Part shown: positions 7,325-45,100 of the stretch, one piece after another
Position numbering within the stretch: position 1 is the stretch's first letter
Layout of the letters: each line of letters opens with the position of its first letter
DNA from: Malacoraja senta
Taxonomy: Eukaryota
DNA length: 64,000 bases
NCBI GenBank assembly: GCA_038087875.1
Contig: JAXLNO010005853.1
Location: forward strand, 62,001-126,000
Direction of reading: 5' to 3'
Position numbers and translations under genes: made by a program
Notes under the pieces: model-generated
Told to the model about the DNA's origin: nothing
Seen by the model: the letters and a program-made list of their open reading frames with translations, nothing else
Databases searched by the model: none

Positions 7325-7379
7325 TTACTGTTTGTATAAGAACTGGCCAGAACTGCCTCAGAAGTCAATAGTACCTGAC

Positions 7380-7595
7380 CCATACCACCATAACCATAGG
7401 CTGATGACAATATCACTGGAGATGCCACAAGACTCCCGTCAACACCAACATTGGAGATGAGACAGTGACGTTCACCTCTGTTCAAACATGAGAAAGTGAA
7501 GCCAATTGCAAGAGTACAGTCCACATAAGTGGCAGCTCAAATATCAAACCCACTCATGGGCTGTAGTGTGCTTATTGAAAATGCAAGAGTATCAT
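7380..7595 (-). pseudogene. Decayed TM exon (left-arm mirror)
   Basis: Reverse complement of 39775-39990; lies in ORF 7303..7524. Confidence 0.7.
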
Positions 7596-11749: not shown

Positions 11750-11987
11750 TTACCAGAACCAGAGGCTGACAACAATGTCACTGGAGGTCCCATGATTCTC
11801 CCATGAACACCAGCAATGGAGATTAGACATGATGTTCACCTATGTTGAACCACTAGAAAGTGAAGTCAATCACAAGAAAGTAGACTCAATAAACGGCAGC
11901 TGAAATGATCAACCTGTCCATTCCCTCCCGCACACACAGGTATCTCCAGATACATTATCACCATCGCTCCAAGATGGTGGCTGAAGC
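11750..11987 (-). pseudogene. Decayed C2/TM exon (left-arm mirror)
   Basis: Reverse complement of 35443-35680. Confidence 0.75.
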
Positions 11988-22261: not shown

Positions 22262-24375
22262 GGGGAGAGAGAGAAGAGGGAGAGAAAGAGAAAAGGGGAG
22301 AGAGAGGGGGAGAGAGGGGGGTGAAAGAGAGGTGGGGGAGAGAGATAATGATGGAGAGAAGGTGGGAGAGAGGGGGGACAGAGAGAAGGGAGAGAGAGGG
22401 AAGGGGAGAGAGAGGGGAGGGGGGTGGGAGAAGGGGAGAGAGAGAAGGAGAGAGAGAAGGGAGAGAGAGAGGGGGGAGAGAGAGGGGAGAGAAAGAGAGA
22501 AGGGGAGAGAGAGAAGGGAGAGAGAGGGGAGAGCGAAAGAAGAGGGGACAGAGGAGAGAGTGAAGGGGGAGAGAGAGGGGAGGGCNNNNNNNNNNNNNNN
22601 NNNNNNNNNNNNNNNNNNNNNNNNNNNNNNNNNNNNNNNNNNNNNNNNNNNNNNNNNNNNNNNNNNNNNNNNNNNNNNNNNNNNNNNNNNNNNNNNNNNN
22701 NNNNNNNNNNNNNNNNNNNNNNNNNNNNNNNNNNNNNNNNNNNNNNNNNNNNNNNNNNNNNNNNNNNNNNNNNNNNNNNNNNNNNAGAGAAGGTGAGAGA
22801 GAGAAGGGAGAGAGTGGGCAGAAGCGAGAGAGGAGGAGAGAGAAGGGGACAGAGAGGGGGAGAGAGAGGAGAGAGAAGGGAGAGAGAGAAGAGGGTAGAG
22901 AAGAGAGAAAGGGAGAGAGAGAAGGGAGAGAGGGGGAGAGAGAGAGGAGAGAGAGAAGGAGAGAGAGGGGAGAGAGGAGAGAGAGGGGGGGGAGAGAGGA
23001 GGGGGGAAGAGAGGAGAAGAGAGAAGTGGGAGAGACAAAGGAGAGAGAGAGAAGGGAGAGAGAAGAGGGGAGAGAAAGAGGGGGAGAAAGAGAGAAGGGG
23101 AGAGAGAGAATGGAGAGAGGGGGGGAGAGAGAGAAGGGGAGTGAGAGAAGGGGAGAGAGAGAAGGAGAGATGGGGATAGAGAGGAGGGGAGAGAGGGGGG
23201 AGAGAGGGAGAGAAAGAAAGAAGGGGAGAGAGAGAAGGGAGAGAGGGGAGAGAGAGAGAGAATGAGGAGAGAGAAGGAGAGAGAGGGGAGAGAGAAGGGG
23301 AGAGAAAGGAGAGAGAGGGAGAGAGAGGAGGGGGAGTGAGAGAGGGAGTGAGAGGGAGAGAGAGGAGGGGGAGAGATAGAGAGAAGGGAGAGAGAGAGGG
23401 AGAGAGTGGGCGAAGAGAGAGAGGAGGAGAGAGAAGGGAGAGAGAGAGGCGGAGAGGGGGGGAGAGAGGAGAGAGAGATGGGGAGGAGAGAGAAGGGGGA
23501 GAGAGAGAAGGGGGGAGAGAGGAGAGAGAGGAGGTTGAGAGAGGGAGAGAGAGAAGGGGAGAGAGAGAAGGGGGAGAGAGAAGGAGAGAGGGGGAGAGTG
23601 AGAGATAGGGGAGAGAAAGAGAGAAGGGGAGAGAGAAGGAGAGAGAGGGGAGAGAGAGGATGGGGGAGAGAGAGAAGGAGAGAGAAAGTAGAGGAGGAGG
23701 AGAGAGTGAAGAGAAGAGTGAGAGAGAGGATGGAGAAGAGGAGGGGGGAGAGGGAGAGAGGAGGAGAGAGAGGTGGGAGAGAGATAGGAGAGGGGGAGAG
23801 AGGGAGGAGGGAGAGAGAAGGGAGAAAGAGAGGGGGGGAGAGGTGTTGGGGAGTGTGAGATGGTGTGTGTGAGGTGAGAGAGGGGAGAGGGGGGAGAGGG
23901 GGAGAGGGGGGAGAGTGGGGGGAGAGATGGTGGGAGAGAGGAGGGGGAGAGGGAAGGAGAGAGAGAGGAGAGGAGGAGGGAGAGATGGGAGGAGTGTGAG
24001 GAGAGAGGGGGAGAGAGGAAGGGAGTGGAGAGAGGGTGAGGGGGAGATGAGGAGGGGGAGATGAGGGGGAAGAAGGAGGGAGAGAGAGAGGGAGAGAATG
24101 AGGAGGGAGAGAAAGGAGAGAGAGGAAGGAGAGGGAGAGCAAGGGAGAGGGGCAGAGAGAAGAGGGGGAGAGAGAGGAGGAGGGAGAAGGGGAGAGAAAA
24201 ATGAGAGAGGTGGAGAGAGAGGAGAGGGGGAAACAGAGGGGATGGGGATAGAGGAAAGGAGGGAGAGAGAAAGAAGGGAGAGAGGGGGGGAGAGGGGGAG
24301 GGGAGAGAGGGGAGTGGGAGAGAGACAAGGGGGGAAAGAGAGAGAAGGGAGAACGAGAAGGGAGAGAGGGGGGGA
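22262..24375 (+). repeat. GA-rich polypurine low-complexity tract (palindrome spacer), with a 200-N gap inside
   Basis: Almost pure G/A on the + strand; it is not mirrored by a TC tract. Confidence 0.95.
22586..22785. other. Assembly gap (200 N)
   Basis: Run of N. Confidence 1.
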
Positions 24376-25194
24376 GATGCGTGGCAGATGCAGTATAATA
24401 TAGATAAATGTGAAGTTATCCACTTTGGCGGCAAAAACAAGGGGGCAGATTATTATCTCAATGGGGGTTAGGTTAGGTAAGGGTGAGGTACAGCGAGACC
24501 TGGGTGTCCTTGTACACCGGGCACTGAAAGTTGTCGTGCAGGTACAGCAGGCAGTGAAGAAAGCTAATGGAATGTTGGCCTTCATAACAAGAGGATTTCA
24601 GTATAGAGTAAAGAGGTTCTTCTGCAGTTGTATAGGGCTCTGGTGAGACCACATCTGGAGTATTGTGTACAGTTTTGGTCTCCTAATTTGAGGAAGGACA
24701 TCCTTGTGATTGAGGCAGTACAGCGTAGGTTCACGAGATTGATCCTGAGATGGCGGGGCTGTCATATGAGGAAAGATTGAAAACACTAGGCTTGTATTCA
24801 ATGGAGTTTAGAAGGATGAGGGGGGATCTTATAGTTACATATAAAATTAGAAAAGGACTGGACAAGCTAGATGCTGGAAAAATGTTCCCAATGTTGGGCG
24901 AGTCCAGAACCAGGGGCCACAGTCTTAGAATAAAGGGGAGGTCATTTAAGACTGAGGTGAGAAAAAACTTTTTCACCCAGAGAGTTGTGAATTTATGGAA
25001 TTCCCCTGCCACAGAGGGCAGTGGAGGCCAAATCACTGGATGGATTTAAGAGAGAGTTAGATAGAGCTCTAGGGTCTAGTGGAGTCAAGGGATATGGGGA
25101 GAAGGCAGGCACGGGTTATTGATAGGGGACGATCAGCCAAAGGGTCGAATGGCCTCCTCCTGCACCTATTTTCTATGTTTCTATCTATGTTTCT
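24376..25194 (+). mobile_element. CR1 LINE 3' fragment at the inner edge of the right arm
   Basis: Motifs [10 protein letters not shown] and LGLYSMEFRRMRGD; ctatgttt tail. Confidence 0.9.
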
Positions 25195-25444: not shown

Positions 25445-25936
25445 GCTATAAAGTTATAAAAAAACTTGATAACATATAATTTCATCATCACCCAGCACAA
25501 ATGCATTTTGGAATCCTTTTCATATTTTGCTTCTGGTTATAAACAAGGAACAATCTTGCTTCTTACTTCCTGGTCAACTTTCTGAGAATTCTGCAAGCTC
25601 TTTCTAATCAAGATAAAAGTGAAGTGCGGTGTGGACTTGAAATGTTGCTGGTGTATTTTGCAATGCACCACAGACGGCAGACAGAGGGTGAAGCCCTTGT
25701 TGCTGCTGTCAGTTCCACTCAGATACTGCAAAGACAAGGGCTGGGTGATTGAAATGCAAAGTGTCAAATTGACGTCCATTTGAAGCTGTCTGATAATTCT
25801 TGCAAAGTCTCTTGAGCCCTTTTACACTCAATGTTAACTGTAAAATTCAGAAAACTACAGGAAACAGCGAGGAGTCTCGGTTCTACTCAGCCAGTGGAAA
25901 GACTTACGGCATTTGAAAGCTCGACGAGAGAAGAGA
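25445..25936 (+). promoter_or_regulatory. Presumed promoter/5' UTR of the receptor gene, present in one arm only
   Basis: Non-repetitive sequence directly upstream of the leader ATG. It contains ETS-type ACTTCCTG (25565-25572), RUNX-type TGCGGT (25625-25630) and AGATAA; such short motifs are weak evidence. Confidence 0.4.
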
Positions 25937-25985
25937 ATGCTGTTCATTTTGCTTTGTGCCTTTGCACTGCCTGTCACCGCTAAAC
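25937..25985 (+). CDS. Leader (signal peptide) exon MLFILLCAFALPVTAK
   Basis: ATG at 25937 with A at -3, a hydrophobic core, a V-T-A cleavage-type motif, and a consensus GTAAGT donor at 25986. The 49 nt length gives phase 1, matching V1. Not shown in the ORF track because it is too short. Confidence 0.85.
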
Positions 25986-28900
25986 GTAAGTATCCTTTAA
26001 TAAGGAGCAGCAGTTGGTTTTCTGGCTGCTTCACTGTGAGTGAAATGATTAACTGTATGAGATAGACTTGTGTGTCCGTGGAAACAGAGCAGGATCAGTC
26101 TTTTGATGCTGTACTTAAGGTGAGGCAGTCTTCCAGAAAGGGAGTATGTGTGTGTGTGAAGACATTTAATACAAACATTTTACAATACAGTAAAGGATGG
26201 GTTTGAGATTATAATGCTGGTGTCAGAGCAGCTGGGGAGGTTGTGTTTAGTTGTCGAACCCACACCTGGATGAAGATATTAGCCCTTGAGAGGGGGTGAA
26301 GGGCATTGTGTCCTTGGCATAAAGGTGAGAAAGGCAACGTTGATGAGAAATATCTATTCTGAGAGTAATGCACCTATAGAATTATCAAGTTCAAAGTAGT
26401 TCAAGCCAAGCCACCTCTTGTCTTCAGGCAAGGAGCTGGATATTTTCCTGGGCTAGAGAAATCTGGCAAGGAATGGGACAAAGTTCAATTCTGTATTGAT
26501 TTGGGTTTAAGAGCCATAATCATATTGACGGTTGACCAGGCTTGAACAGCCGAATAGCTTCCTGTGTTGCTCTGAATGTCTTTGCTCTCATTGTTGATTC
26601 TGATCCTAATCAAATTGGGTTTGGTTTATTATTGTCACATGTACTGAGGTTCAGTGAAAACCTGCACCAGGGATAATACCTTTCCCAAAATAACATCTCA
26701 TATGCTAAGAATGAAATGTTATTGAGATCTTCCATATACCTTGCAGTGGCCACAAACATTTGTTTATACGACACTTCCTCTGTATGTGTAATGCTTTATT
26801 CTTTACTCTATTTGTTTTCTCTAATGCACTATGTGATGTAATCATGAATGGTACAATTTAGCCGGATAACACACAAAATAATTTTTCGCTTATCTCAGCA
26901 CACATGAAAATAATAAACCAATACTAATTTTCCTCAATCAGTATTACCGCCCCATCTAAAATATCCCTTCCCTCTCCATTATCAATACCTGTAGCCAGGA
27001 CCATTAAATGTCTGATCCTGCCCGGACTCTGCTTCATTTTCCCATATAGATATTTCTACCTATTAATAACCAGGCTCACTCACATATTTACTACTTTCCT
27101 GCTATCTGCCACTCACAATCTTGGTGCACATTATATCTCTTTTCTGTTGCCACACACTAGTAATAGATACTGATCCATTACTTTGCCTGTTTGGCTCAAA
27201 CTCTTCCTCGTGCACCAATAAATTTCCCTACTACAACTGTCCCAGTGAGGCTGAGGTGCAACCCATTGATCTTGGAGACGTCTTTCCTGCTGCAGAACTG
27301 GTCCAATGCCACTAGAATTTAGAGCAGAAACGAGAAAGTCATGGAAATTAGTGCAGTAATTAAAATGTCCCGAGCATCGCAGTAACCAGAATTCTTGTGG
27401 ATTAGCACAGCAACTAGAATATCACAAGAATTGAGCAGTAATTCAGCTCAAAAATCAATCCATGGCTCCACAGCCCCAGTTTCGACCCTTCACCGAAACA
27501 CTGAAGGCAACTTAGAGTAGTCTGTTAATTAACGATGCGCATCTTTGGGATGTGGGGAAACAACCTAAGTAAGAGAAACCCATACAGTTATAGGTGGAAA
27601 GTGCAGACTACACACAGCATCCGAGGGCAGGATTAAACTGTGAATCCCAGGAGTTGTGAGTTAGCAGCTCCACGAGCTACTCCACTGTGCCAGCTGTGTA
27701 CATCCTCGATCAGTGGTCAGGTACTTCCCTAGTGGGATCTTTCTGTGCACTACTTGCCTGTTGCATTCCCATCGCTACTTCACCGGCAACACTTCAAACC
27801 TGTGAAGCATTATGGGACCATCCCCTGACAGTGAGGGAAGTGATGTAAATGCAAGGTCTCTCCTGGACAGCAGCTTAAAGCTGTGAGAGATGTGGCTCCA
27901 GTGAAGAGCCAGCACAGCCCGGAGAAGGGGAACCACTGTTAGTGTCACAGTTCACCTCTCCCATTTCTCACAGCTCACCACGTGGTGAGGGTGACACACA
28001 ACACAGCAGCATCGCAGTTCAACCGCCTTCCACAAGGGCAGGGGACCCAGGGTGGGCGCAGCCTCCTACAGTGACTGTGGCCCTCAGTTTAGTCTTAACG
28101 TTACATCTCTGTGTCTTCACAGGCAACAGTATAAACGGTTGGACCATGGAGACACCGGACAATGTGATGGGGAGGGAGGGGAAGCTGGTGGTTCTGTACT
28201 GCAAGTTCACTCACCCTAACCATCAATACAAAGGCAAAATAAGCATCATCTGGAGTGAGTGGAAGACCCAGAAGATCTTTTTCAAATACACAAATTATCG
28301 ATCAAGCGGCAAGTATATTAATAACATCCTGGATAATGTAGAAAACCGCTACAAACCAATGGGGAACCCTCGGAAGAACGATGCTTCCCTAATCATTAAT
28401 CAGCTGAGAACGACGGATACAAACAAGATCCTCAACTGTCGTGTTGAGCTCACGGGAAATGCAGGAAAGTTAGGATGCCAACATGGGAAAATCACAGTAT
28501 CAGGTGAGGAATTATTGTGCTGCAAACAAACAATTTGTCTTCCTCCCTGCTTCCTGTGATTCCGATGATACTGGCATGGCTGGTAATTGTTCAAGCTGCT
28601 GACTTGTTGGGTATATCACTGGGAGATCATGCCCTGGTTTGACTGCCTAAAATACAACACGTTGCACTAAACTGAATTTAACTCTATTAACCATCCCTCA
28701 ACCACTTGCCCCACTGATCAAGATCCTGCTGTAGTTTGTGATAACCATCTTCACTCATACTCCTCATTTCTGCCTTGACCATGATGTACAGTCACTGTGG
28801 AATGGGGGTGATGTCATTGCCACATCTGGCCTGCTGTTATAGTCACATATTATGTCTCCTCCAGTTAAGTTTCAGATATTGGTATTGGTTTATTATTGTC

Positions 28901-31900
28901 TGGGGCACTGAGATACAGTGACATTTTTCCGAGTGCTATCCAGACAAATCATACCATTGAGGCACTAGAAACTGCAGATGCTGGAACCATGAGCTAAACA
29001 CAAAGTGCTGAAGACACAGTGGGTCAAGCAGCATCGGTGGAGGAAATGGACAGGCAATTATCCGGGTCGGTTCCCTTCAAACTGATGGAGTAGTAGGGAG
29101 AAAGTTGGGAACGGGGCAAAGCTTGCCCAATGATAGGTGGATGGAGGTGGGGGGTGGGCACGGGGGAGGTGCTTATCAGATGGATGGACAGTGATAATGG
29201 CGAGTGGTGAAAAGGAAACATAAAAGGTGTCAGACAAGGAAACAAAATGTAAAGGTGGAGGTAAATGGGTGGAATGGGCCTGGGGAGATGGGCAGGGGAA
29301 AGACTTGTGATAGAAGGAATTATGGGATTCAAGGATGGGAGATGAATACGGGAGAAGGAGCAGTGTGACAGGGATAATGGGAGCAATGTGTACACAGTGG
29401 GCTGGTAGGGGGGGGGGGGGAGGTATTACTTGAACTTTGAGAGTTCAGTGTTCATACGGTTGGGTTATAAGCTACTCAAGCTGACCATGAGCTGCTGTTC
29501 TTCCAGTTTGCGTCTGCTCTCACACTGATAATACACAAGGCCAGTGACAGTCAGGTCAGCGTGGGAACAGAAAGAGGAGTTAAAAAGCTTGGTAACCAGG
29601 AGCTCCAGCAGGCCTTGGCAGACTGAACACAAGTATTCATCACATTGGGGACACATAATGCAATAGATGAGGTTGGAAGAATCATACCTTAGATGTGTGC
29701 ATCAGGCACTGTAAAAGAGAAAATAAACAAAGTGGAGAATGTAGTATGACAGCTACAGTGAAAGCGCTACTAAAGAATAGTGCAAGCGTTTAACGCGGTA
29801 GATTGGAAGATTGGGTAATTCAACCCCAGCATTTGTGAGGTCCATTCAAGACTCTAACAATAGGTAAGAAGTTGTTCTTCCATCTGGTGGTAACTACTGT
29901 CAAGTGTTTGTATCTTCTGGGTGTGAGAATGTCAGGGTATTAGTTGTCCTTGATAATGTTGGTTACTTTCTCGAGGCAGCATCAAGTGTAGAATGGTGAA
30001 ACAGAGAATCAAAATTGACCCTGGCAGATTGGAGAGACAGCATTTGTTCAGGCAGTGTTAGTGAACAGGTAGGGGTAGTCCCGGGTTTTTAAAACAATGC
30101 TTCGACTATTACGTGAAATGGGAGAAGGAGTCAGGCACACAGATGCTCGAACCAACTCTCATCCATTAAATCATGGCTAATTCTGGACCTTGTTCATTCA
30201 CTGAGAGATCCCCCAGACAGTGGTCTCCATGAGACCCAGAAAAACTGTGGACCTTTAGTTTGAACTTACTCAACTACTTTTTATCCACAGCTTCTGCATA
30301 ATGTGGATTGCTTGATTGTAATCATGTATAGTCTTTTCGTTGACAGGTTAGCATGTAATAAAAGCTTTTCACCGTACCTTGGTACAGGTGACAACAAACT
30401 AAACTCTGGGATGGAAAATTCAGTAGGTTCACAAACATTCTTGGAGGGAATTTCTTGACCTCTGTCCTGAATGTCTGACTACTTTTTCCAAATCCCTGAC
30501 CTGTGGTTTTTGAAACATAAGCAGGAGGAAAGAAACTTTCCACAAGTACTTGTGAAGTAAGTAAATAAATAAGTAAGTAAGTTTATTGGCCAAGTATTCA
30601 CATACAAGGAATTTGCCTTGGTGCTCCGCCCACGTAACAACATGACATACAGTGACAGTTACGAATTACTCAGAAAACACTAAACATTAATAATAATAAA
30701 ACATTAATGTTAAAACACCATTGATCAAGCATGTGAACCAACAAAATACCAGATCAAAGGGAGGCATCAGATTTTTGGTTGTTTAAAGCAACTACTCGTG
30801 GATAAAAACTGTTTTTATGTCTGGCTGTGGCAGCTTTGACAGTCCGGAGTCGCCTTCCAGAGGGAAGTGATTCAAAGAGTTTGTGGCTAGGGTGAGAGGG
30901 GTCAGAGATGATCTTGCCCGCTCGCTTCCTGGCCTTCCTGGAATCTATCTATTCCCCAGAGCCGTCTGACCATTGACATCCATCAGTCCCAGTCCCCCAT
31001 TCTTTCCACACAATCCCCCAAATTACACCAGTCAGGTGTGTTTAATAGTCATATGCACTGGGGTTAGAACAATACAATTATTCATTGCTGCAACTTTGCA
31101 GGCACATTGATGCAACATATAATTAGGTATGTTACAAAACTTACCTTCAGTCGCGGTGTAATTCTGCCACTGGCCGTGTGCGCGATTTTGGCGCCTTTAA
31201 GGGGGGGCGGGTTTCTCCTCCCTTGTCCTGGTTAATATTTTGTTGGAGTACAAGCCTTGGCTGACAAATCGTTCCTACCGGCGTTTTGTGAATTTTTTAT
31301 TTTTATTAAATCGTCAATGTCAGCGCTAGAGTAATTTTAAAAGCAGCTCCTGAAGCGTCAACGCCGGTAACGGGGACGGATTTCACACACGGGACAGGTA
31401 AACGAAAGTGGTTTCTTTAAATGTATAAAAGTGCTTCTTAAGAAGCCTTTAATTCACATTTTTTCATGCGACACGGTGATTTTATTCCCCGAATTAACGG
31501 CAGTATTTTTCATGCCAATACGGGGTTAAATTCACCGCAAATGAACGTTCCAAAAGATCGCGTTCCAGAAATCCTCACTCGCAAGATGAATTAAATGCCC
31601 ATTAATTTACAGGTATTAAACATTCAATTCCTTCTGTTTGGCCTGTAAATTCATGAAAATTAGATTTAAAAATTATGTTATATTGTGAATTAGTGTGTGA
31701 ATGTTATTTGGACACTTAGGCTATTTAAAAATGTTAATCTATTCTTAAGAAATTGATAGATGTTTAGATCTAGTAATTGAATTTTGTAATTAGCTACAAT
31801 TAGGTAACTAACTAATTATATGCTTTACTTTCATGTCTTCGAAGTAAGATTGTTTCATATTTGTTTCAGAATGCTTCAATCTATAATAACTGAAAATTTC

Positions 31901-34900
31901 TTTCAGTTATCATAATTTTTAAGAAAGTTATCGGCTTTTAACTGTCCTCGATCACAGCTTTTGTGTTAAGTCAATGGAAAAGCAATAGGGAACTAGATGC
32001 TAATTTCTGAGTATGATAATGGCCATAACTTTTTTAATACTGAAGATATGAAAGTGAATTAAGTGTTAAATTAAACTTATTTTTATGCTTTATCTGATGG
32101 GATAAATTGCAGACTTTATTTTTAAAATCTCAAAATTTTGTAATATTGCTAATATAATAATTTCACAACAAACAATAATAAAATATTTGTTATACATGGT
32201 AAAATCATTTGAATAACATTTGAAGTACTTGGTGTAACCTTATACAAAGTACATAATAGTTTGGTGCTCAGTCTTGGTTCAAGAGCCTGATGATGCAACA
32301 ATGAACCTAAACACAACCAAACTTCAGCACTGATCTGTTATGGATGAATAACAGGATTGCTGAATCACAGTTCAGGAGGGAGATCTATAGTGATATCAAA
32401 ACAACCTGTTTAATGGTAAGATTGTCTTCTTGAACCTGGAGATAATGGTTCACATTTCCTGTACCTTCTACCTGGCAGTAGCAACAAGAGGAGATCAAGC
32501 CGTGTTCTGTGCAACTGTGATATTGGCTGCCCACCTGAGGCAACACCTGTAAGTCCTTTCATTGTTGTGGAGGTTGAAATCCATGATGGACTGGGCAATG
32601 TCTTTCTGCAGCCTCCTTGGTTTTTGGGGCATTCTGGTTACCAAAGGAGGCTGTGAAGTAACCAGTCAGTATGGTCCACGGTACACCTGTAGAAGTTATA
32701 GTGCATTTGGTGATGTGACTCAAACATCTGAGGAATTGGAAGAGCTGATGAGCTTACTTTGTGATTGCATCAATGTACTGGGCCCTGGAAAACTCAGTGA
32801 AGTGCATGTCCAGGAACTTGAAGCTCTTCACTCTCACCACTGTCGTGCTCCCAATGATAACAGGTTGATGGAATCTAGGTTTTCCCTTCCCCAAGTCAAC
32901 AATGAACTCCTTGGTTTGGCTCAAGTTCACAGCAAGATCATTGTTCTGGCAGCACTCAACCAGATTATGGGTCTGCCTCCTGTACATTGACTCATCATTA
33001 TCTTATATTCATTCAACAACAGCAGTATCGGCAATCTCTCTATCTGAAGCATTGTTTGAATCTACCAACGTCACAGGCAGTGAGGCCCTGGATTAATGAA
33101 ATGTACTTTGCATCATTTTTGCTTATGTTCATGACAATTTAAATCTGTCTCCTTGTCTTCAAAACTAGTTGTTATTGTGTCCACTTCAATCGAATCTCAT
33201 CTCGACTTTCCAAGAAGACTGAACCAGCTTTTCCAGTCTAACCCTGGAGGTGACTCTGAAGGAACTTTTATGCATCCTCTCTCATCCTTGACATCCTGGA
33301 GAGTGATGACTGGAATTGGAAACAAATCTCTTGTAGTTGAACAGGTTCAACACAGCCTTCACCCCTATATTTACTCTTATTCACTTACCAAACAAGTGAC
33401 CACAACAGCCGATCACCAGGGCAATCCTGTCCCCAACCTATCACAGATTCCTCCACCTTCCCACTTCTCTGCAACATAAAATACATGTCTTTATTGTAAC
33501 TTTTCCCATCAACCTGACAATCATCTGTTTCTCTCCTGATTTGTTCTGTTTTATGGCAATGTAGCTATCGTAATCTTGTACTTCATGCTTTCATCATTGA
33601 GCCCAGCGTCTCTCACTTCACTAACCATTGCCTCAATGTGTCACATTTGTTTTATTTAACTGTGTCTTGTAAGTTCTCCACATGTTCCATGGAACCCTTG
33701 AGCATTGTTCTGTTTAACTATCTTATCTTCATTTCTGTGTAGGTATTATCACTCGGTGTGTGTCTGTCAATATTTATCACACACACCTTCTCCACCTTTT
33801 CATATTCCATCTGCAATCTTGTTACATTCGATGGAAAATGAACATGTAGTACAACATGCAGTAGAAAACGTAGTAGAGGTATACTACATCCACCAGATCC
33901 TTCCTTATCAATCCTGCTAGATATATTGTCCACCCTAACCCTAAACTCCACTTACATTGACAACAGAACTTCCCCTTCATCAAGAATTAAAACATAAATT
34001 GCTGTAAAATGAATCAGGTCTGAATGCAGAGTCAATTGGAGGAGCGACAATATCCATGTAGGAAGGTGTGTTGCTGCCACTTAGGAGGGTTTAATCTAGT
34101 TTGGCAGAAGGTTGGGAACTGGAGCAGGTGGAGGAATTGAATGGGATGTAGACTTCAGCTTAAGACTGATCAGAAGGGCTGGCAGGGCCAGGTTAATGAA
34201 CACAGTGGAACTGATGGGCTGAAGTGTGTTTATTTCAATGCTATGCGTATTATGTGTAAGGCAGATGAATGTAGAGTTTGAATTAATGCATGGAAATATG
34301 ATGTTGTGGCCATTAGAGTTTTGGTGAGCGAGGGGCAGGACTGACACCACAATGTTCCAAGGTTTTAGGCGTGATTTAGCAACATTGTAGGTTATATAAA
34401 AATACAAGCAGGTCACCTGCAATTATTCAAGTTGATTTGAGAATTCTGCATATTATTTATAAAGAAGATGAAGTTACATTTACAGTTACATTTCACCGCT
34501 CTAGAGCAGCGCAGGAGGGTCAGGGACAGATGGGTCAGAGTGGGAGTGGGATGGAGAAACATGGTCACAGATGTGTAGGAAGGAACTGCAGATGCTGATT
34601 TATACCGAAGATAGACACAACATGCTGGAGTAACACAACGTGCCAGGCAGCATCTATGGAGAAATGGAATAGATTCTTCTTCAGGTCTGAAGAAGGGTTC
34701 CATTCTGAAACATCACGTACTCCTTTTCTCCAGAGATGCTGCCTGATCCGCTGAGTTACTCCAGCATTTTGTGTCTATCAACATGGTCACAGACACAGGT
34801 GAAGTATTGATGAAGAAAATGTGGTTAATGCATTCGACCAATGAATGATGTCCATATTTTAAATCATTCTCTATACGAGGTGATGTCAGCGCATCCATGG

Positions 34901-37900
34901 TGATCGGAAAGAGAGGAGGTGGTGCCACACTGAGATGCACCTTCAGCCCCTCGAGCGCAAAGAGCAGGGTGATCACTATCCTCTGGATGAAGGGGACTCC
35001 ATGGGAAGAGTCCGTTGTCTTTAATCATACCCGCTCCGACCCCACAAGCAGTCATGGCACTGACAATGTATATAGAGGAGGTCGATATGAGCTGGTGGGA
35101 AACCTAGACAAGGGAGACGCCTCCATCAGAGTGAGGGGACTCACGTTGAATGACACCAACAACTATTTCTGTCATGTTTGGATCTGGAAATCCCCTCAGA
35201 ATATTCAGGTGACTCAGGATGAGACGGAACTACAGGTTTTGGGTAAGGAAACAGTCAGTGTTGAGGAGTAAATGATAAAATCACATTGAACAACGGTGAG
35301 AAGAATCAGCTTCGTTCTGTTTCCTCTCTGAATATTTCACTCCATTCCCCTGCTGGGTCTCTTTCAAATCTTCACCCCTTCCTGGTTCTCCCCCTGCACC
35401 AATGAATAACAGTGAATGTAATTTACTTTTATCCCTCTCTAGGCTTCAGCCACCATCTTGGAGCGATGGTGATAATGTATCTGGAGATACCTGTGTGTGC
35501 GGGAGGGAATGGACAGGTTGATCATTTCAGCTGCCGTTTATTGAGTCTACTTTCTTGTGATTGGCTTCACTTTCTAGTGGTTCAACATAGGTGAACATCA
35601 CGTCTAATCTCCATTGCTGGTGTTCATGGGAGAATCATGGGACCTCCAGTGACATTGTTGTCAGCCTCTGGTTCTGGTAATGGGGGAGGGGAGAAGAGAG
35701 AGTAACTCGGGTGTGAGTGATCCTTGATTATGTTGGCTGCTTTCCCAAGGAATAAATGCAGTTGATGGGCGGGGGAACGAGGGAAAACCTTTTATTCAAT
35801 CTACATGGTTAATCCTGAGCTTTCTGTTGCTTGTAATTTTAATCATCCATGCAATTCCCCCTCTGACTATTTTTTGTGACTTCCTTATAACCAGTCTCAT
35901 GCAATTTGAAGAACAGGGCTCACTGCATCATTGCAGACTCCATTGAATTCAAGAATTTTGGATGATACATTTTCTCTCTTTTATCAGTAACCAGTTCTAC
36001 TGAAGATAAGCAAAATGGAATATTAATCAGTTATTCTCTCAACGATTATTGCAACTTAAAATAAATTAGCTGAAGTTGCAGAGGTTGTATAGAGGGGTGT
36101 TGATGAAATTATCTGGTTGATAAATTAAGGAAGGTAACTGGAGACAGAGAACACAAACAAAGATATAAACCAGAGCTGCAAAATGCACGTCAGAGCTGCA
36201 AGAAACACCCAGCAGATCAGGCAGTGTCAGTGGAGAGAGGAGAACTGAGTCAGTATCACAGATGGATAACCTGCTGTAGAACTTCTGATAAAAACAACGG
36301 GAAAGTTACCAGAAATTGATGTATTCAATGTTGACTCAATGGTTCAATGGGTCAACCTTGAATAGAACAATTTCTGGTGATTTGCCCGCTGTTTGTATCA
36401 AAACTGGCGAGTTCTACAGCATCTGTGATACTGACTCAGTTCTCCTGAAGAAGAGTCACGACCCGAAACGTCACCCATTCACTCTATCCAGAGATACTGC
36501 CTGCCCGCTGAATTACTCCAGCATTTTGTGTCTATTTTCGGTTCAATGGTTTCTTTATTATCACATGTACCAAGTACAGTGAAATACATTTTTTCATACA
36601 GATCAGTAAGAATATCACCTTACATCAATAAGCACAATCCCCCCGGTTAGTACATAATATACAGAAGAACCCACTGAGTCTGGGCAACAGTTGCCATTTT
36701 GCACCATTTTACAGTCCTCGTTGCAGTGGCCACAGAGGCCCATTGCAGCCACCCCCTCCATTCCAGTTGTCCTGGAATATTGACCCTCACCTTGCACAGC
36801 CCTCTTCAGCCCTTCTTCCCCAGGGGAGGTGTGCGGTGGGGGGGTTCCTCCCGCAGATGTGATTAAGGCGCGGAAGTTAAAAAACGCCACCACTCCTAAT
36901 TCGGTTACCCAGGCCTTTTCTGGTTGGCTGCCAGTTACTAGCAGAGTTCCGCAGGGCTCGGTGCTGGGGCCGCTGGTCTTCACGCTGTATATTATTGATT
37001 TAGATGAGGGGATTGAAGGCTTTGTGGCTAAGTTTGCGGATAATACGAAAATAGGTGGAGGGGCAGGTAGTGCAGAGAAAGCAGGGACTCTGCAGAAGAA
37101 CTTGGATAGGTTTGGAGAGTGGGCAGAGAAGTGGCAGACGGAAAAGTGTTGAAAAGTGTGGAGTCATGTATTTTGCTAATAGGATTAAAGGCGTTGATTA
37201 TTTTCTAAATGGAGAGAGACTCCAGAAATCGGAGGTGCAAGGCGACTTGGGAATGCTGGTGCAGGTTTCCCAAAAAGTTAATCTGCAAGTCGAATCAGTT
37301 GTAAAGAAAGCAAACGCAATGCTAGCATTTATTTCAAGAGGGCTTATATACTAAAGTAGGGATGTAATGCTGAGACTCTTTCAGGCGCTGGTCAGGCCAC
37401 ATTTGGAATATTGTGAGCAATTTTAGGCACCATATCTGAGGAAGGATGTGCTGGCTCTGGAGAGGGTCCAGAGGAGGTTCACAAGAATGATCCCAGGAAT
37501 GAGTAGGATAACATCAGATAAATATTTGACGGCACTGGGCCTATGTTTGCTGGAGTTTAGAAGAATGAGGGGGGACCTCATTGAAACAGACAGAATAGTG
37601 AAAGGCTTGGATGTGGGGAGGATGTTTCCACTAGTGGGAGAGTCTAAGATGAGCAGTTTTAGCCTCAGCATTAAAGGACGTTCTTTTAGGAAGGAGATGA
37701 GGTGGAATTTCGTTCGTCGGAGTGGGTTGAATCTATGGGATTCTTTGCCACAGAAGGCTGTGGAGGTAAAGTCAGTGGATATATTTAAGGCAGAGATAAA
37801 TAGATTCCTGATTAGTGCGGGTGTCAGAGGTTATGAGAAGGCAGGAGAATTGAGTTAGGAACGATAGATCAGCCACGATTGAATGGCGGAGTAGACTTAA

Positions 37901-40900
37901 TGGGCCGAATGGTCTCATTCTACTCCTATCGCGTAAGATCCTATGAACCGTGCCTCCCTCAGATGAGCTTCGGGTGCAGACCCTAAGACCCCCACCCCTC
38001 CTAATTCAGTTAACCGCTCCTTTAGTCACCCTCCATCCTCCTCTCTGGTTCCTGGTCTTCAAGGTCAAGGCTCCATCTTGTCCAGACTGAAGCTGAGATG
38101 TCTTTACTTGAGATTGGCCCTTATTAGAATAGTGCAGGAGGTCAGGAGCAGATGGATCAGAGTGAGAATGGGATGGACAATCCAAGTCACAAGTATGGAT
38201 GAACTATTGATAAAGACCGTGTGCTTATTGTATTCAAATATTAAATCATATTCACACTTTAAAACTCTTCTCTATGCAAGGTGATAATGACAGAGCATCC
38301 ATAGTGATTGGAAGGAAGGGTGCGACTGCCACACTGCCCTGTTCCTTCAGCGCCTCAAACAGGAATCCCAGCTCCATCACCATCAGCTGGATGAAGGGGA
38401 ATCCACCAAAATGGTCTGTTGTCTTTCGTCACACTTCTCCCCGCCCAGCAGCACATCGCATTCCTGAAAATGTAAATAAAGGAGATCGATATGAGCTGGT
38501 GGGAAACCTTGAGCAGGGAGACGCCTCCATCAGAGTGAAGGGACTCAAACTGGGTGACGCCAGTGATTACTCCTGTCATGTTTATGTCAGGACTTCAACG
38601 TTGACGACTGTGACTCAGGATGAGATGAAACTGCAGGTTGTGGGTAAGGAAACGTATGTTATGCTGAAAACGATAATATCATATTGAACAACCTTAAGAG
38701 GAATGAGCTCCCAGTGACAGCGTAGACCAGCACAGGAACAGGCCCTTTGGCCCGCAATGTCTGTACCGAACATGATGCTACGTTGATCTCGTCTACCTGC
38801 AGGTGATACATTTCTTCCATTACCTGCATTTCAAAAAGCCTCTAAAACTCCACTATCGTAGCTGCCTCCACCTCCACCCCTAGCAGTATTTTCCTGGCAC
38901 CCACCACCCTCTGTGTAAACAATAACTTTCCCCACATATCTCCTTTCATCTTTTCCCCTCTGTCCTTATCACAATACCGTCTATTCGTTGACATTTCTGC
39001 CACAGGCAAAAGGTTCTGACTCTCTCTCCTATCCATGTCTTTCATATTTTTATAAACTTTCAACAGTCCAGAGAAAGCAGTTCAAGTATGTCCGACCTTT
39101 TCATATAACTAATACCCTCTAATCCAGGCAGCATTCTGGTAAACCTCTTCTGACCCCTTTCCAAAGTCTCCACATCCTTCCTGTAATGGGTGAGAACTGC
39201 ACATAAAACTGAATGCAATAATCCCAGTGTCGTAACTAAAGTTGTATAGAGCTACAACATGACTTCCTGACTCTTGTATTCAGTAGATCGACACTAAAAG
39301 CTGGAGTAACTCACCGGGACAGGTAGCATCTCTGGAGAGAAGGAATGGATGACGTTTTGGGTTGAGTATCTTCTTCCCAACCCAAAACGTGACCCATCCT
39401 TCTCTCCAGAGATGCTGCCTGTCCCGCTGAGTTACTCCAGCTTTTTGTGTCCATCTTCGGTTTTAACCAGCATCTGCAGTTCCTTCCTACACATCTTGTA
39501 TTCAGTACCTTGACCAATTAAACAAGAATACTGTACACGTTTTTAACATGTTGCCATTTTCAGGGAGTTATGGAATTGGATCCCAATATTTTTCTGTACA
39601 TCAGTGGTTTTAAGGGTCTTGCCCTTGTCTACTTTCCACTTGCATTCAACCTCCCAAAGTCAACACTTCACACATGTTCAGATCAAACTCCATCTGCCAT
39701 TTCTCTGCCTATATCTGTATTTAGATTAAAAATTGCAGAATCTTTCGGCAGTTCTACGTTTATCTGCCCTCCTCATGATACTCTTGCATTTTCAATAAGC
39801 ACACTACAGCCCATGAGTGGGTTTGATATTTGAGCTGCCACTTATGTGGACTGTACTCTTGCAATTGGCTTCACTTTCTCATGTTTGAACAGAGGTGAAC
39901 GTCACTGTCTCATCTCCAATGTTGGTGTTGACGGGAGTCTTGTGGCATCTCCAGTGATATTGTCATCAGCCTATGGTTATGGTGGTATGGGTCAGGTACT
40001 ATTGACTTCTGAGGCAGTTCTGGCCAGTTCTTATACAAACAGTAAAGGGCCTGTCCCACTTTGGTGACAACTGAAGACAACTGAAGACTTCTCTTGACGC
40101 CGGTACCTGTCGCCGGTTGACGTAGGTTGACGTAGGTAGTCGCCAATTGAATTCACCGAGGTCAGCACCGGCGACAACCTACGTTATCCTGGCGACAACA
40201 TACATTATCCTGGCGACAACCTACGACAGCATCTACGTCAGGAGAAGACAAGCTACGACAAGCCCAAGGTCGCCGAGTGTCGCCGAAAAGTTTTCACCAT
40301 TTCAAAATGCAGCGGTGACCAGAAAAATGCTACGACTCTTTGGGCGACTTAAGGAGACGACTCACAACCATACAGGTGACACCCGGCGACCGTGTGGTGA
40401 CTACCCAGTCGCCTGTAGTCACCTACAAAATCGCGTATGATGGACTGGCTCTTAAGCAAGTTATTAAAATTGTTGCTTTAAATGTTAGCACAAAGGCTTC
40501 ATGCTGCCCAGACAGAAGATGAGGTGTTGTTACTTGAGATTGGGCCTCGTTAGAACAGTCCAGGAGGTCTGAGACAGACAGATCAGAGTGGGAGTGGGAT
40601 GGAGAATCAAAGTCACAGGCATGGATGATGTATTTTTATAAACCATGTGGAATAGATTGTTAAATACAACTTTTCTCTATACAAGATGGAAAGAAGAACA
40701 CATCCATGGTGATTGGGAAGAGAAGAGATTCAGCCACACTGCCCTGCTTCTTCAGCAACTTGAACAAGAATCCCAGCCCCATCACTGTCCGCTGGATGAA
40801 GGGGAATCCACAGGAAGAGTCCACAGTCTTTAATCACACTCACCCCCACTCTGTGAACCCTCCCTACACTGTCACTGTAAAGGGAGGAGGTCGACATGAG

Positions 40901-42171
40901 CTGGTGGGAAAACTAGACCAGGGAGACGCCTCTATCAGAGTGAAGGAGCTCAGACTGAACGACAGCAGTGACTATTTCTGTTACGTTTGGGTCAGGAATT
41001 CCACACAGGAGACGGTGACTCAGGATGAGACGAAACTGGAGGTTGTGGGTAAGGAAAGATCTGTCTGTGTTGTGCTGTGAACGATAAAATCACATTAACA
41101 ACTGTAAGAGGACATGAGATCCACTGACAGCTGGAGCCGAGATCGGCCCAATCCATTGTAGGTTCCATTCCTTGCCCTGGGCTTCCCTTGCTCAGCACTG
41201 CCCCCAGTGGTTGGAAAACAGTGCTGATTCCAGCCAGGATGCACAGAGCTCCCTGCAGCAGGATCAGAGATTCAGACCCACATTCACCTGCTGAACCTCC
41301 AGTCCCTGTGTCTGTGGCATGGTCTGTGTTGCAAAGATCCACAGACTGCCCTGGGGTATTTACATCCGTCTCTTTCATTCACATCGACTCCGGGAACCTG
41401 TATGTTTTCTCACTGAATATTACATAGAACAGTACAGCACAGGAACAGGCCCTTTGGCCCTCAATATCTGTGCAGAACATAATGGTATTGTAAGTTAAAC
41501 TAATATCATCTGCCGACACATGATCCATATCCCTCCATTCCCTGTAGATCCATGTGCTTCTCAAACACACTATCATATCTGCAAATATTTCACTGCAGTC
41601 TCCTAGGTGTGTCCTTCCAATCCCCATTCAGATGGACTCTATCCGCACACACCATCAACTGTGATTCATTCAATGAATTTAATTGAATTTTTTCCTTCTC
41701 CAAGTCCCAGCCACCATCCTGGAGCTGTCTGTTGTGAGCGACAATGTAACTGGAGAACACACCCTCGTGTGCTGGGCTGAAGGGAAGCCCCCTGCAAACA
41801 TCACGTGGATCGGCCCAGGGAACAGCGCACTGCCTGTGACCAGTAGTGAGATGACAGTCATGCATGATCCAGAGAAATTACTGACTGTGGGAAAACTGCT
41901 TCACCCCAGGCTGCCAGGGAAATACACGTGTGTGGCTGTGAATGAACACCAGAGAGACACGTGTGAGATCCACCTATTCGAGGATGGACTAAGAGCGTTG
42001 GCCATTCGGGCTGCCATTTATGCGGTCTATTTTCTTATAATTGGCTTCACTTTCTGCTGGTTGAAGAGAGGTGAACGTCACCATCTCAGCTCCATTGCCG
42101 GTGTCAACAGGAGGGATGCTGCATCTCCAGTGACAGTGGCAGGTTCTGTTGATGTGGATCAGGCAGTGTAA
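25937..42171 (+). CDS. Siglec-15-like Ig-superfamily receptor, complete predicted gene (leader-V1-V2-V3-V4-C2-TM-tail), join 25937-25985, 28123-28503, 34880-35242, 38281-38643, 40686-41048, 41705-42171; 661 aa
   Basis: The six exons sum to 1986 nt (662 codons including stop). Every intron is GT-AG and phase 1, and there is no internal stop. V1 (WTMETP..VLYCKFTHPNHQYKGKISIIW..RYKPMGNPRKNDAS..CRVE) and C2 (VCWAEGKPPANITWIGP..GKYTCVAVN) resemble my recollection of human SIGLEC15 (WSMQVP..LPCTFTHPHRHYDGPLTAIW..GNPRRNDLS..YFCRVE; LCTAEGEPPPALAWSGP..GRYTCTAAN). No database search was run and splicing is predicted. Confidence 0.8.
28123..28503 (+). CDS. V-set exon 1 (Siglec-15-like, retains F-strand CRVE arginine)
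   Basis: Acceptor gtcttcacag|GC, donor TCAG|gtgagg, 381 nt; B-strand Cys (LYC), C-strand Trp (IIW) and F-strand Cys (NCRVE). Confidence 0.9.
31124..32151. mobile_element. Mirror copy of the 15286-16314 transposon
   Basis: TSD atataat on both sides. Confidence 0.85.
34574..34780. repeat. Penelope-derived hairpin insertion with ~14-bp TSD (mirror at about 12655-12862)
   Basis: Flanked by the direct repeat aacatggtcacaga; internal inverted arms. Confidence 0.7.
34880..35242 (+). CDS. V-set exon 2
   Basis: Acceptor ttctctatacgag| (GAG), donor TTGG|gtaagg, 363 nt; motifs LRCTF, ILWMKG, GDASIRV, DTNNYFC. Confidence 0.85.
35443..35680 (+). pseudogene. Decayed C2/TM exon downstream of V2
   Basis: cagccaccatcttggagc..gataatgtatctggaga and attggcttcactttctagtggttcaacataggtgaacatcac align with the start and TM end of 41705-42171. 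Most of C2 is deleted and the ancestral frame has stops. Mirror at 11750-11987 (-). Confidence 0.8.
36915..37925 (+). mobile_element. CR1 LINE fragment
   Basis: Mirror of 9451-10460. Confidence 0.9.
38281..38643 (+). CDS. V-set exon 3
   Basis: Acceptor tctatgcaag|, donor GTGG|gtaagg, 363 nt; motifs LPCSF, ISWMKG, GDASIRV, DASDYSC. Confidence 0.9.
39775..39990 (+). pseudogene. Decayed C2-end/TM exon downstream of V3
   Basis: gctgccacttatgtggac..attggcttcactttctcatgtttgaacagaggtgaacgtcac aligns with the functional TM/tail (IGFTFSCLNRGERH vs IGFTFCWLKRGERH). It contains an in-frame TGA and its 5' part is replaced by a CR1 fragment. Mirror at about 7380-7595 (-). Confidence 0.75.
40046..40452. 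mobile_element. PIF/Harbinger-like MITE (mirror)
   Basis: TAA TSD on both sides; mirror of 6922-7324. Confidence 0.7.
40686..41048 (+). CDS. V-set exon 4
   Basis: Acceptor ttttctctatacaag|, donor GTGG|gtaagg, 363 nt; motifs LPCFF, VRWMKG, GDASIRV, DSSDYFC. Confidence 0.9.
41705..42171 (+). CDS. C2-set + transmembrane + cytoplasmic exon
   Basis: Acceptor ttccttctccaag|TC, C2 Cys pair, hydrophobic stretch LAIRAAIYAVYFLIIGFTFCWL, basic stop-transfer KR, and TAA ending at 42171. A possible internal donor AGAG|gtgaac lies at 42070/42071. Confidence 0.85.
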
Positions 42172-45100
42172 CTTCAGAGAGAAACAATGCTACATTCCCA
42201 CAGCTATGACCGTGTGTCTGTGGGGTACATGGAGCTGTCCTCACATCAGTCCCACTCAGCGACCCCTCCCTCAGTGGTGTATCTGATACATTTGCAACTG
42301 CATTGCTGCTGATTCCTGCATCCACATAGAACTCAAATTTCACATGCCTCTTAGCTGTCTTCCTTCATCCTAAACCATGGTTTAATCTCTACATTAGCTG
42401 ACAGACCCTTGGCAGCTTTGAATCATTTTCATGAACTTCTTTGCTAATTCTTTCCCCAAGGCAGAGGAAGAATAGATTTTCCCTGATCCTCATTTTCCAC
42501 CCACTAGTCTCTGCATTCATTGGATCAACCTTTATAGCTTCTGTTACCATCGGTGCGGGTCCACCAACAGACACATCTTCCACCTGCCTACACTTTCAAC
42601 ATCCTGAGGGGACCATTCCCTTTGCGACTCCATCATCTGTTCTTCCATTCCATTCAACCATTTACTCGGAAAGTGCATGGTGTAGCTTTCCAGGCTAGAC
42701 TCTGCAATCAACAATATCGGTGTGCTCACTTTCTCTGTCTGTGTCAAAGCTGGTCAGCTGTGTTGTAGATAATCCATCTGCATTATGAACTTGTTTTCCT
42801 CCCTCTACGGGCACGGCCTGATCTGTGGCCATCTCCTGTAGCTCTGGTTTGCATTTGCAGTTTCTACATGTTCTCTTTCTAAATGCCCAGATAGCTTTGT
42901 CAATCATTTATTACTATGGAAACCAGGCCTCTCCCCATAAGACATTCCTTTGTCCCTGTCCCTCTCTCTCTATCTCACTCTTTCTGCACCAACAATCTGT
43001 TTTATTGTCTCAGCTATTCAATCAGTAGCATGAACTCTTTCTCTCTGCACAGATGCCGCCTGACCCGTTGAGTATCCTTTGCACTCAGGAGAGACATTCC
43101 CTTTTCCTTGCGGATCACAGGTGTCCCCTGCATTATGGAGCGTTACGTGTAAGCTGAAACCACATCATTTTTTTTCGCACTAATTCCAAGAGTGCATATT
43201 TTATTCTGCATCTCAAATTTTTCACTGGTGATTTGTGAATTCTGCAAGGGAGAATTTCCATTACCGGAACAGCCGGACTATGGGCTTTACCCAAATTGGA
43301 CTGGTGGTTGGGTTCAAGGATTGGGCACGTCTTGTAACATGAGATGAGATCTCCTGGTAAAGAGGGATGACTACATTGAAGAATCTGGTACCCAGTTCAC
43401 TTGTGTCTGAAGCCGGTTTGCTAAACTTTAATTAAGGCATTTACAATGGAGTGATGCAGTTGGCTAAAGTAGTTTCAAAATGAAAGAAAATGCCGACAGT
43501 AATATTGAGAAGATTATTTGTAAGAGGATTGGGAGATTGTAAGACAGAAGTAAACATCTTAAAAAATTATGAGGACAGGATTGATGGAGAAAATTGGTAA
43601 ATATAAAACGGATAAAAGGAGCTTCTGCAAGTATATAAAAGGAACAGAGTATCCGAAGCAAACAAAGGATGAAAGCACCAAAAGTACTGCAGAGACGCTG
43701 TCTGACGATGCAAAGACAGGTGGGTTAGTAAGTGATGAGGACACAATGGGCCGGCACAGACATATAGACGGTTTAAGTGAGTGGGTAAAAAACTCGCTGA
43801 ATTAGTATGATGGGGGGAACTGTACCCTGTAATGTTGCATTAAAACATCCTTCCTTTTATACACTCATCTTGTGCAATAAAAACCAGCATTCCATTTGTC
43901 TTTACAACTGCTTACAATACCTGCACGCAAGTCTCTTGTGTTTCATGTATACGTACCCAATTTCAGGGGGAAATGAAACGGCAAGTTATTATTTGATTGG
44001 TGTGTGAATGCAAACCTTTTCCTAACTGTCTTCCACATATCTTAACACCATCACCCTCATTCTACGGCCCACTGGTTCCTATTAGATTTCATTCCCCCAA
44101 TATCAGTGCTTGAATTTTGCATACCTACCTCAATGTGGTATTTGATTAAAGATCTTCTGAACATGCAAATACACTGCACCCATTCATATTTTCCTACCAA
44201 TTACATACTTGGAAAAAAACTCCGAGCAGGTTTGTCAAACCTTGAATAAATAAAAATGTGTGCAGTTCTGATAGCCCTAGTACAGGAAGCATGTGGAAGC
44301 TCTTTGGAGAGGGTGTAGAAAAGGTTTACCAGGATTAGAAAGTATGAGCTCTGAGGAGAGGTTGGACATTTTCTCTAGAGAGTCGGATATTCAGGGAAAA
44401 TCTGATAGAAGTATAAAAAACTATGAGAAGCAGAGATTAGGTAGACAGTCAAAACCTTTTCCCCAGGTAGAAATGACAAAGACTAGAGGGTATAGTTTTA
44501 ATATGAGGGGCAGGTTTTTTTCTACATAGAGTGATGGGGCCTGGAATGCCCTGCCAGGTTTAGTGGAATCAGATACAATAGGGCATTGAAGAGGCAATTA
44601 GATAGACACATGGATATACAGGGAAGGGGGGAATGTGGATCACACGTAGGCAGAAGAGGTTAGTTTACCAGCCATCAAATTTGGTAGTGTCATGATGGGC
44701 CGAAGGGCCTGTTCCTGTGCTGTACTGTTCCTATATTCATTAAAATACAAATTGATTTTATCTAATCCCTTGAAACTTTCAAAGTGTGCAGTTATCACGT
44801 ATAGATTCTAGCAAAATAAATGCTAATTGTGTGAGGCTAACTGGTGTGTAGTTTGTTTATTTCTCTCAAACACCATTTGTTGCATTTGACACTTGCAAAC
44901 CTTCAGGAAATGTTGCAGAAGATGTGAAATTTGAGGCCTTTGCGATATGTGCACCTGGGTGCAGGGACAAAGTGGTCTCTTGTCAAGGCAGAAATGGGAG
45001 GCGACATGAAGATAAGACCTGGGGTGGGCATCACGTTGTGGTTGGTGGAAATATCATAAAATTTTCTCGTGGATGTGGAGGCTGGTGGGGTAAAAGATAA

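Follow-up and report, generated by a model that had tools for sequence, protein, structure and literature searches.

The stretch of DNA discussed here, called the window, comprises 64,000 nucleotides (nt) of the skate Malacoraja senta (NCBI GenBank assembly GCA_038087875.1, contig JAXLNO010005853.1, positions 62,001 to 126,000 of the forward strand). Its plus strand carries a single gene made up of a leader exon, four exons each coding for a V-set immunoglobulin (Ig) domain (V1 to V4) and a last exon coding for a C2-type domain, a transmembrane segment (TM) and a short tail, hereafter the C2+TM exon. The gene is a chondrichthyan Siglec-15-like receptor. The introns that follow V2 and V3 hold two decayed copies of the C2+TM exon, relic 1 and relic 2, and the way in which these copies came to lie inside the gene is the subject of the present analysis. 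The coordinates of all features are collected in Table 1, where units A, B and C denote the repeated segments centred on V2, V3 and V4.

All V exons have canonical AG/GT splice sites, are in phase 1-1 and match the Pfam V-set profile. When compared with the PDB, V1 finds human Siglec-15 as its top match (7zoz_A, E 1.8e-13), with the CRVE motif aligned to CRVE; as in the Siglec-15 family, the N-terminal V-set is thus closest to Siglec-15 and keeps the arginine. The ectodomain departs from the one V-set and one C2-set of that family, being V1 + V2 + V3 + V4 + C2. V2, V3 and V4 are mutually similar exons; for V4 the Siglec-15 V-set is again the top PDB match (E 1.3e-6), and the position of the arginine motif is occupied by Tyr in V4 and by His in V2 and V3. 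The TM of the live C2+TM exon reads 'LAIRAAIY...' with an Arg, and a Lys is found mid-TM in chimaera and ray relatives. The ratio of nonsynonymous to synonymous substitution rates (dN/dS) is 0.66-0.94 among V2-V4 and 0.4-1.6, from small counts, for V exons between copies and species. The V exons are open in every copy examined, while the relics gathered stops and frameshifts within 170-240 nt, and the V exons are therefore maintained although fast-evolving, as is usual for immune receptors.

Table 1. Features of the receptor gene, its repeated units and their mirror copies (positions within the window)
Feature	Position	Strand	Evidence or remark
Leader (signal peptide) exon	25937..25985	+	phase-1 donor; read from sequence
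V1 exon, Siglec-15-type V-set with CRVE	28123..28503	+	Pfam V-set; PDB match
Unit A upstream intron block	34486-34570 + 34783-34879	+	self-comparison; weak homology as far as 34424
SINE-like insert (212 bp) splitting the unit A upstream block	34571-34782		self-comparison
V2 exon, open, phase 1-1	34880..35242	+	splice sites; V-set E 2.7e-16; present in RNA contig
Relic 1, dead C2+TM exon copy	35443..35680	+	self-blastn; tblastn; alignment
Block Q, single-copy spacer after relic 1	35796..36337	+	homologous to sawfish inter-unit spacer; single-copy depth
Transposon block between Q and unit B	36341..38066	+	SINE-like 36445-36546; LINE reverse transcriptase fragment 36784-37950 (+); depth 1e4-1e6
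Unit B upstream intron block	38067..38280	+	self-comparison
V3 exon, open, phase 1-1	38281..38643	+	Pfam V-set; splice sites; RNA contig
LINE fragment, same family as 36784-37950	38722..39827	-	nested SINE-like 39283-39496; high-copy depth
Relic 2, dead TM+tail part of C2+TM exon	39828..39996	+	self-blastn; tblastn; alignment
Unit C upstream intron block	40493..40685	+	end of Q still attached from ~40470
V4 exon, open, phase 1-1	40686..41048	+	Pfam V-set; splice sites; RNA contig begins at 40685
Live C2 + TM (Arg in TM) + short tail exon	41705..42171	+	stop TAA 42169-42171
3' untranslated region (UTR) blocks after the live exon	42172..42871	+	utr165 42172-42337; P 42338-42674; Q-like 42708-42871
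Mirror copy of relic 1	11750..11987	-	2 differences in 238 nt
Mirror copy of relic 2	7374..7542	-	0 differences
SINE, short interspersed nuclear element; LINE, long interspersed nuclear element.

Relics of the terminal exon

The similarity of the relics to the live exon was measured by self-blastn of the window and, at the protein level, by tblastn with the live exon. All three pairwise matches lie at 75.5-78% identity over 138-164 nt, with E-values of 1e-18 to 1.8e-28: relic 1 to the live exon (35517-35657 to 41997-42138, 75.5%, E 1e-18), relic 2 to the live exon (39828-39965 to 42004-42141, 77.5%, E 1e-24) and relic 1 to relic 2 (35518-35678 to 39823-39983, 78%, E 1.8e-28). Apart from the live exon itself, tblastn finds in the window only relic 1, relic 2 and the mirror copies in an inverted arm described below. 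In DNA runs of three related species, assembled contigs span both relics, and the bins at the relics are about as deep as those at the V exons (50-210, single copy); the transposons flanking the relics reach 1e4-1e7. An earlier examination of the letters alone, hereafter the sequence-only reading, had reckoned with the possibilities that the relics would fail to align to 41705-42171 or would prove to be a dispersed repeat; the alignments to the live exon (E 1e-18 to 1e-24) and the single-copy depth in three species speak against both.

Relic 1 also aligns over its acceptor region and first codons (35410-35464 to 41671-41725, 78%). The polypyrimidine tract is kept, the original AG has become GG and a new AG lies 1 base upstream. 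About 75 nt of C2 are retained as far as the first Cys, about 200 nt of C2 are deleted, and the sequence resumes just before the TM and runs on into the tail. In the frame of the live exon it contains a TAG at live codon 42055 and a TGA at 42022, in addition to a 1-nt deletion. These lesions agree with what the sequence-only reading had described at this place, a copy of the terminal exon with most of its C2 deleted and with stops. The TAG, the 1-nt deletion, a 4+1-nt deletion and the C2 deletion are common to the window, Amblyraja radiata and Rhinoraja longicauda, which indicates that the exon was already dead in their common ancestor.

In relic 2, homology begins at 39823-39828 and ends at 39996. 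Neither an acceptor nor C2 is present, the TM arginine codon is a TGA, and a minus-strand LINE fragment lies directly 5', where it has taken the place of the intron of unit B and of the relic's C2. The stop and the truncation had been correctly recognized; the start first given, 39775, was about 50 nt too far to the left, and the spacing of about 200 bp proposed for both relics holds for relic 1, which at 35443 follows the end of V2 at 35242, whereas relic 2 lies 1.18 kb after V3. In A. radiata (locus L002), 1.4 kb of extra sequence (26967-28353) is situated exactly at the 5' break of relic 2, and the V3-V4 intron measures 11.8 kb vs 2 kb in the window.

Both relics are present in other skates. 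They were found at 14948-15264 and 28353-32 of A. radiata locus L002 (95.6% and 95% identical to the window) and at 14989-15298 and 19332-19579 of Leucoraja erinacea locus L004 (92.8% and 93.5% identical); relic 1 was found at 7122-7378 of R. longicauda locus L003. These identities between skate genera equal those of the neighbouring intron blocks, from which it follows that the relics drift neutrally. Intact units had been thought worth seeking in relatives at these positions: the skates carry the same relics instead, and a nearly whole, frameshifted exon occurs in the sawfish discussed below.

The evidence on splicing comes from one sequencing run, presumed to be RNA, of a skate relative about 5% divergent from the window. 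A 1145-nt contig covers 34990-35241 and 38280-38643 and joins V2 to V3 (35242|38281) across a canonical junction (G|GTAAGG ... AAG|GTGAT), so that 3038 nt including relic 1 are skipped. Depth is zero in the relic 1 bin (35390-35589) and in the unique intron bins around it, which argues that the run is not DNA. The same contig ends at the last base of V3, and a separate contig of 2306 nt begins at V4, its length being that expected for V4 and the C2+TM exon followed by about 1.5 kb of 3' UTR. RefSeq models of A. radiata (XP_032874704.1) and L. erinacea (XP_055488229.1) read V1-V2-V3-V4-C2. The V2-V3 contig and these models bear out the earlier proposal that splicing reads through the first copy of the terminal exon.

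The relics might nevertheless still be in use, whether as regulatory elements or as alternative last exons from which short forms of the receptor are made. Relic 1 does keep its polypyrimidine tract and an AG from which a frame of 50 codons is open, and RNA contigs extend over the intron that holds relic 2, their depth there being about a third of that on the exons. Over relic 1, however, RNA depth is zero, and in A. radiata a 4-nt deletion interrupts the alternative frame; relic 2 is without an acceptor, and both relics diverge between genera at the intron rate. We regard such a continued use as very improbable.

The gene is present a second time in the window: 26099-44944 recurs, inverted, at 21324-2416, with a BLAST identity of 97.7% and 1.65% mismatches. 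The V exons, relics and other unit features described here therefore each have a mirror copy. The leader exon lies within a 650-bp stretch (25448-26098) that is absent from the mirrored left arm (junction 21322-21324). Two N gaps and a satellite-like array (22262-24388) occupy the centre of the inverted repeat. The C2 part of the live exon (41705-41980 vs 5669-5394 on the minus strand) is the most divergent between the arms, differing at 18/276 nt (6.5%) with a dN/dS of about 1.2, whereas the adjoining TM part differs by 1%, against 1.65% overall.

Origin of the repeated units

Judged from their sequences, the units are paralogous over the upstream intron, the V exon, the start of the following intron and the C2+TM exon. 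Upstream homology of V2, V3 and V4 extends over about 200 bp, in accordance with the roughly 150 bp noticed in the sequence-only reading, and the units also share the opening 60-70 nt of the intron behind each V. Like the live exon behind V4, each relic stands behind a V exon, with order and orientation preserved; it is similar to the live exon, carries lesions, changes neutrally and is single-copy, as a pseudoexon should be. The LINE family represented at 36784-37950, a putative CR1 according to the sequence-only reading, has a weak RVT_1 match (E 1.9e-6). A SINE-like, hairpin-forming element matching itself in both orientations occurs at 34571-34782, 36445-36546, 39283-39496, 54443-54561 and 55111-55199, and is extremely abundant in skate DNA runs (summed depth 1e6-1e7).

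Outside skates, the family has the order leader-V1-V-C2-TM, with one V of the V2-V4 type (Callorhinchus, Heptranchias, Mobula, Pristis and others; the Scyliorhinus, Heterodontus and Hemitrygon models are only partial). In a tree of V domains, V2, V3 and V4 form clades of 99-100% support each, and in the best tree all skate V domains constitute one clade (69/83). Divergence between units in skates is 0.22-0.33, about five times that between skate genera and about equal to the skate-sawfish divergence of introns.

The explanation that we favour, with a probability of roughly 0.85, is that an intragenic segment was tandemly duplicated twice in the skate lineage, that V1 to V4 are spliced to the last C2+TM exon and that the internal copies of this exon decayed. 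The older form would have been leader - V1 (a sialic-acid V-set) - one further V - C2+TM exon. The duplicated segment, of about 2-3 kb, would have comprised about 200 bp upstream of the second V, the V exon, the intron, the C2+TM exon and the beginning of the 3' UTR. As the V exons are in phase 1-1, joining V to V keeps the frame; transcripts would splice V1-V2-V3-V4 to the last C2+TM exon and skip the two internal copies, which, decaying at the neutral rate, would have become relics 1 and 2. The triplication of a V-C2-TM unit put forward in the sequence-only reading thus stands, given the paralogy of the units and the outgroups with one V, with the amendment that the unit is an intragenic segment and not a whole gene. 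This follows from block Q running into the upstream-V block (in unit B once the transposons are removed, and in unit C) together with the utr165, P and Q-like blocks after the live exon.

Two other origins have to be weighed. Three complete tandem genes (leader-V1-V-C2TM) may have become fused after a clean loss of the intergenic DNA, the leaders and the V1 exons. Whole-gene tandem copies do exist in the family, the Mobula birostris model P0003 fusing two neighbouring genes and the A. radiata model P0006 running into the leader of the next gene. Between the units of the window, however, tblastn found no leader or V1 similarity, and the inter-unit DNA is fully explained by the utr, P and Q blocks leading into the upstream-V block, plus transposons. 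Such a fusion would further require two independent precise deletions of >8 kb each, and the contiguous junction from Q to upstream-V, without remains of a gene start, is found in four loci. We consider this origin improbable.

Alternatively, the V exon alone would have been duplicated and the C2/TM-like pieces would have arrived separately, by gene conversion or by insertion of paralogue fragments. Skates have many paralogues, and hybrid exons occur among them: in R. longicauda L003 (7122-11450), behind relic 1 stands only one V exon, which resembles V3 at the start and V4 from there on, and then a live C2+TM exon. This copy looks like the expected product of an unequal crossing-over between V3 and V4 that removed relic 2, and an A. 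radiata paralogue has two V3-type domains; together they indicate that the number of units is still changing. A separate arrival is nonetheless hardly credible, in view of the relics each standing after their V in the same order and orientation and of unit A holding both ends of the V-to-C2TM intron (35243-35304 and 35410-35442). In the sawfish, moreover, unit 1 aligns continuously from V through the intron to C2TM. The relics also carry an ancestral 9-nt block lost from the live skate exon and are therefore not recent conversions from it.

Within the favoured explanation, a twofold duplication of an intragenic segment, the order of events deserves attention. The sequence-only reading held that the first two terminal exons had died and that splicing reads through as a consequence. 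Their death is confirmed by stops, frameshifts and deletions; the order of the two steps may be the reverse. The first AATAAA/ATTAAA after the stop is at 43839, 1.67 kb downstream, and the homology between units reaches no farther than 0.7-0.9 kb past the stop. The segment would then have ended upstream of the poly(A) signal, and the internal end-exons would have possessed an acceptor and lacked a 3'-end signal from birth. Read-through and exon skipping, and hence the in-frame gain of a domain, would have come at once rather than after the death of the end-exon. Judging from the end of the unit relative to the first signal, the internal copies probably never had a poly(A) site.

Several observations weigh against parts of this explanation. 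The duplication order is contradictory, V exons giving (V2,V3),V4 at 84/77 and flanks A,(B,C) at 92/94. The RNA nature of the run is a guess, and its source is the divergent relative already mentioned. The V3-V4 joint was not observed directly in the presumed-RNA contigs, and the V3-V4 splice, with the skipping of relic 2 that it entails, is taken from the RefSeq models of two other skates. The V3-V4 intron (38644-40685), relic 2 included, is covered at a depth of 13-16, against 36-58 for the exon contigs; this coverage may correspond to a retained intron, pre-mRNA or an internal transcript. In some isoforms the 'terminal' exon could be an internal one, owing to a donor that lies downstream, after 'WLKR' (RefSeq model P0002). 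Finally, the poly(A) argument assumes that the present 3' end is ancestral and that the missing UTR homology after the relics is original: comparison of the units found no 3'-UTR homology after either relic, an absence that may be original or due to transposons.

The sawfish locus and the age of the array

A paralogue of the sawfish Pristis pectinata (locus L001) displays the order V1, one V, C2+TM exon 'a', a second unit and C2+TM exon 'b'. In exon 'a' the C2 is open, its second cysteine is lost and a frameshift precedes the TM; this exon is skipped. The V and C2+TM of the second unit are deleted, and exon 'b', which is intact, is used by the RefSeq model XP_051876576.1. Positions 10567-16288 of the locus thus include a nearly complete, frameshifted C2+TM exon between the V and the C2+TM exon in use. 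The locus also contains a younger duplication of UTR and spacer (11023-12314 to 13095-14657, 83-93%).

The block order utr, P, Q, upstream-V, the same as in skates, recurs between the sawfish units, a point in favour of both arrays having a common origin. In the full alignment the distance between sawfish copies 1 and 2 is 0.21, and that between sawfish and skate units 0.24-0.31; an impression gained from BLAST identities, that the sawfish copies were older than the skate-sawfish split, was dropped on these values. The DNA tree of the TM and tail is a star. The V protein tree favours a skate-only clade, although a grouping of V4 with other batoids is not rejected by the approximately unbiased (AU) test (p 0.24). 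In the flank tree a sawfish-only clade is not rejected (p 0.41). We put the odds of an origin shared with skates and of a parallel one at about even.

A bolder proposition, which we hold tentatively and as somewhat doubtful, is that the array predates the skate-sawfish split and was resolved in opposite ways, that the internal end-exons were born without poly(A), a V domain being gained in one mutational step, and that the locus preserves a series of intermediates. If it is true, skates kept all V domains and let the internal end-exons rot, while the sawfish kept one V and the last end-exon.

Comparison with known receptor genes

Gain of domains through tandem duplication of phase-symmetric Ig exons is textbook knowledge, and skipped pseudoexons are known in other receptor genes. 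The locus is a new example of a known process, mechanistically ordinary but clear. Its particularity is that the duplicated block held the exon with the stop codon, that the dead copies and the unit junctions are still legible and that relatives show different stages: one V; one V with a skipped, near-intact end-exon; four V; and a V3/V4 hybrid that has lost a unit. As a rule, the similarity of domains is the only evidence that a receptor of the Ig superfamily has grown by tandem duplication, whereas here the by-products of the process can be read in the introns. This raises a testable question: if the exon with the stop codon is part of a duplicated block, can the receptor use the added domain immediately, or must that exon first be disabled? 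In full-text literature we found no account of the architecture of this gene family or of the C2+TM relics, and the four-V models are known only as automatic annotation.

The locus further shows that skates possess a Siglec-15-like family that evolves fast and varies in copy number, with a charged TM and short tail in some members and an immunoreceptor tyrosine-based inhibitory motif (ITIM)-type tail in others. In A. radiata L002 (30469-30836, 34492-39860) and L. erinacea L004 (21522-21804), the exon of the last unit matches that of the window only in its C2 part, the first 283 nt; a different TM follows this C2, and splicing leads on to ITIM-type tail exons. The Arg-TM/short-tail form of the window and the ITIM-tail copies look like paired activating and inhibitory receptor forms.

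Among known systems, the closest is Siglec-15 itself (7zoz, and RefSeq shark and ray models named 'sialic acid-binding Ig-like lectin 15'), to which V1 is most similar, CRVE being kept, and which shares the C2-type domain followed by a TM with a basic residue. This residue is a mid-membrane Lys in Siglec-15 and an Arg near the outer end of the TM here. Unlike mammalian Siglec-15, with one V and one C2, cartilaginous fish add an arginine-less second V, and skates have three such domains.

V domains were also gained by tandem duplication elsewhere in the same family. The Callorhinchus milii gene LOC103188797 (XP_042192088.1, model P0152) has three tandem Siglec-type V1 domains before V-C2-TM-ITIM. 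In that case only the Siglec-type V1 exon was triplicated, two copies being identical, and the model contains no terminal exon among the repeats. In teleost IgD, C-delta2-3-4 blocks are repeated in tandem; there too several exons are repeated as a block within a single gene, the frame being preserved by symmetric phase-1 Ig exons. The IgD blocks differ in consisting of internal exons only, so that nothing is bypassed and no fossil exons are left. In two-domain KIR genes, the skipped exon 3 is a pseudoexon left by intragenic duplication and, as in the skate gene, an Ig-domain exon stays in place, is skipped, decays and records an earlier architecture. The skipped exons described here are, in contrast, copies of the last, stop-codon-bearing exon, and the outcome was the gain of a domain and not its loss.

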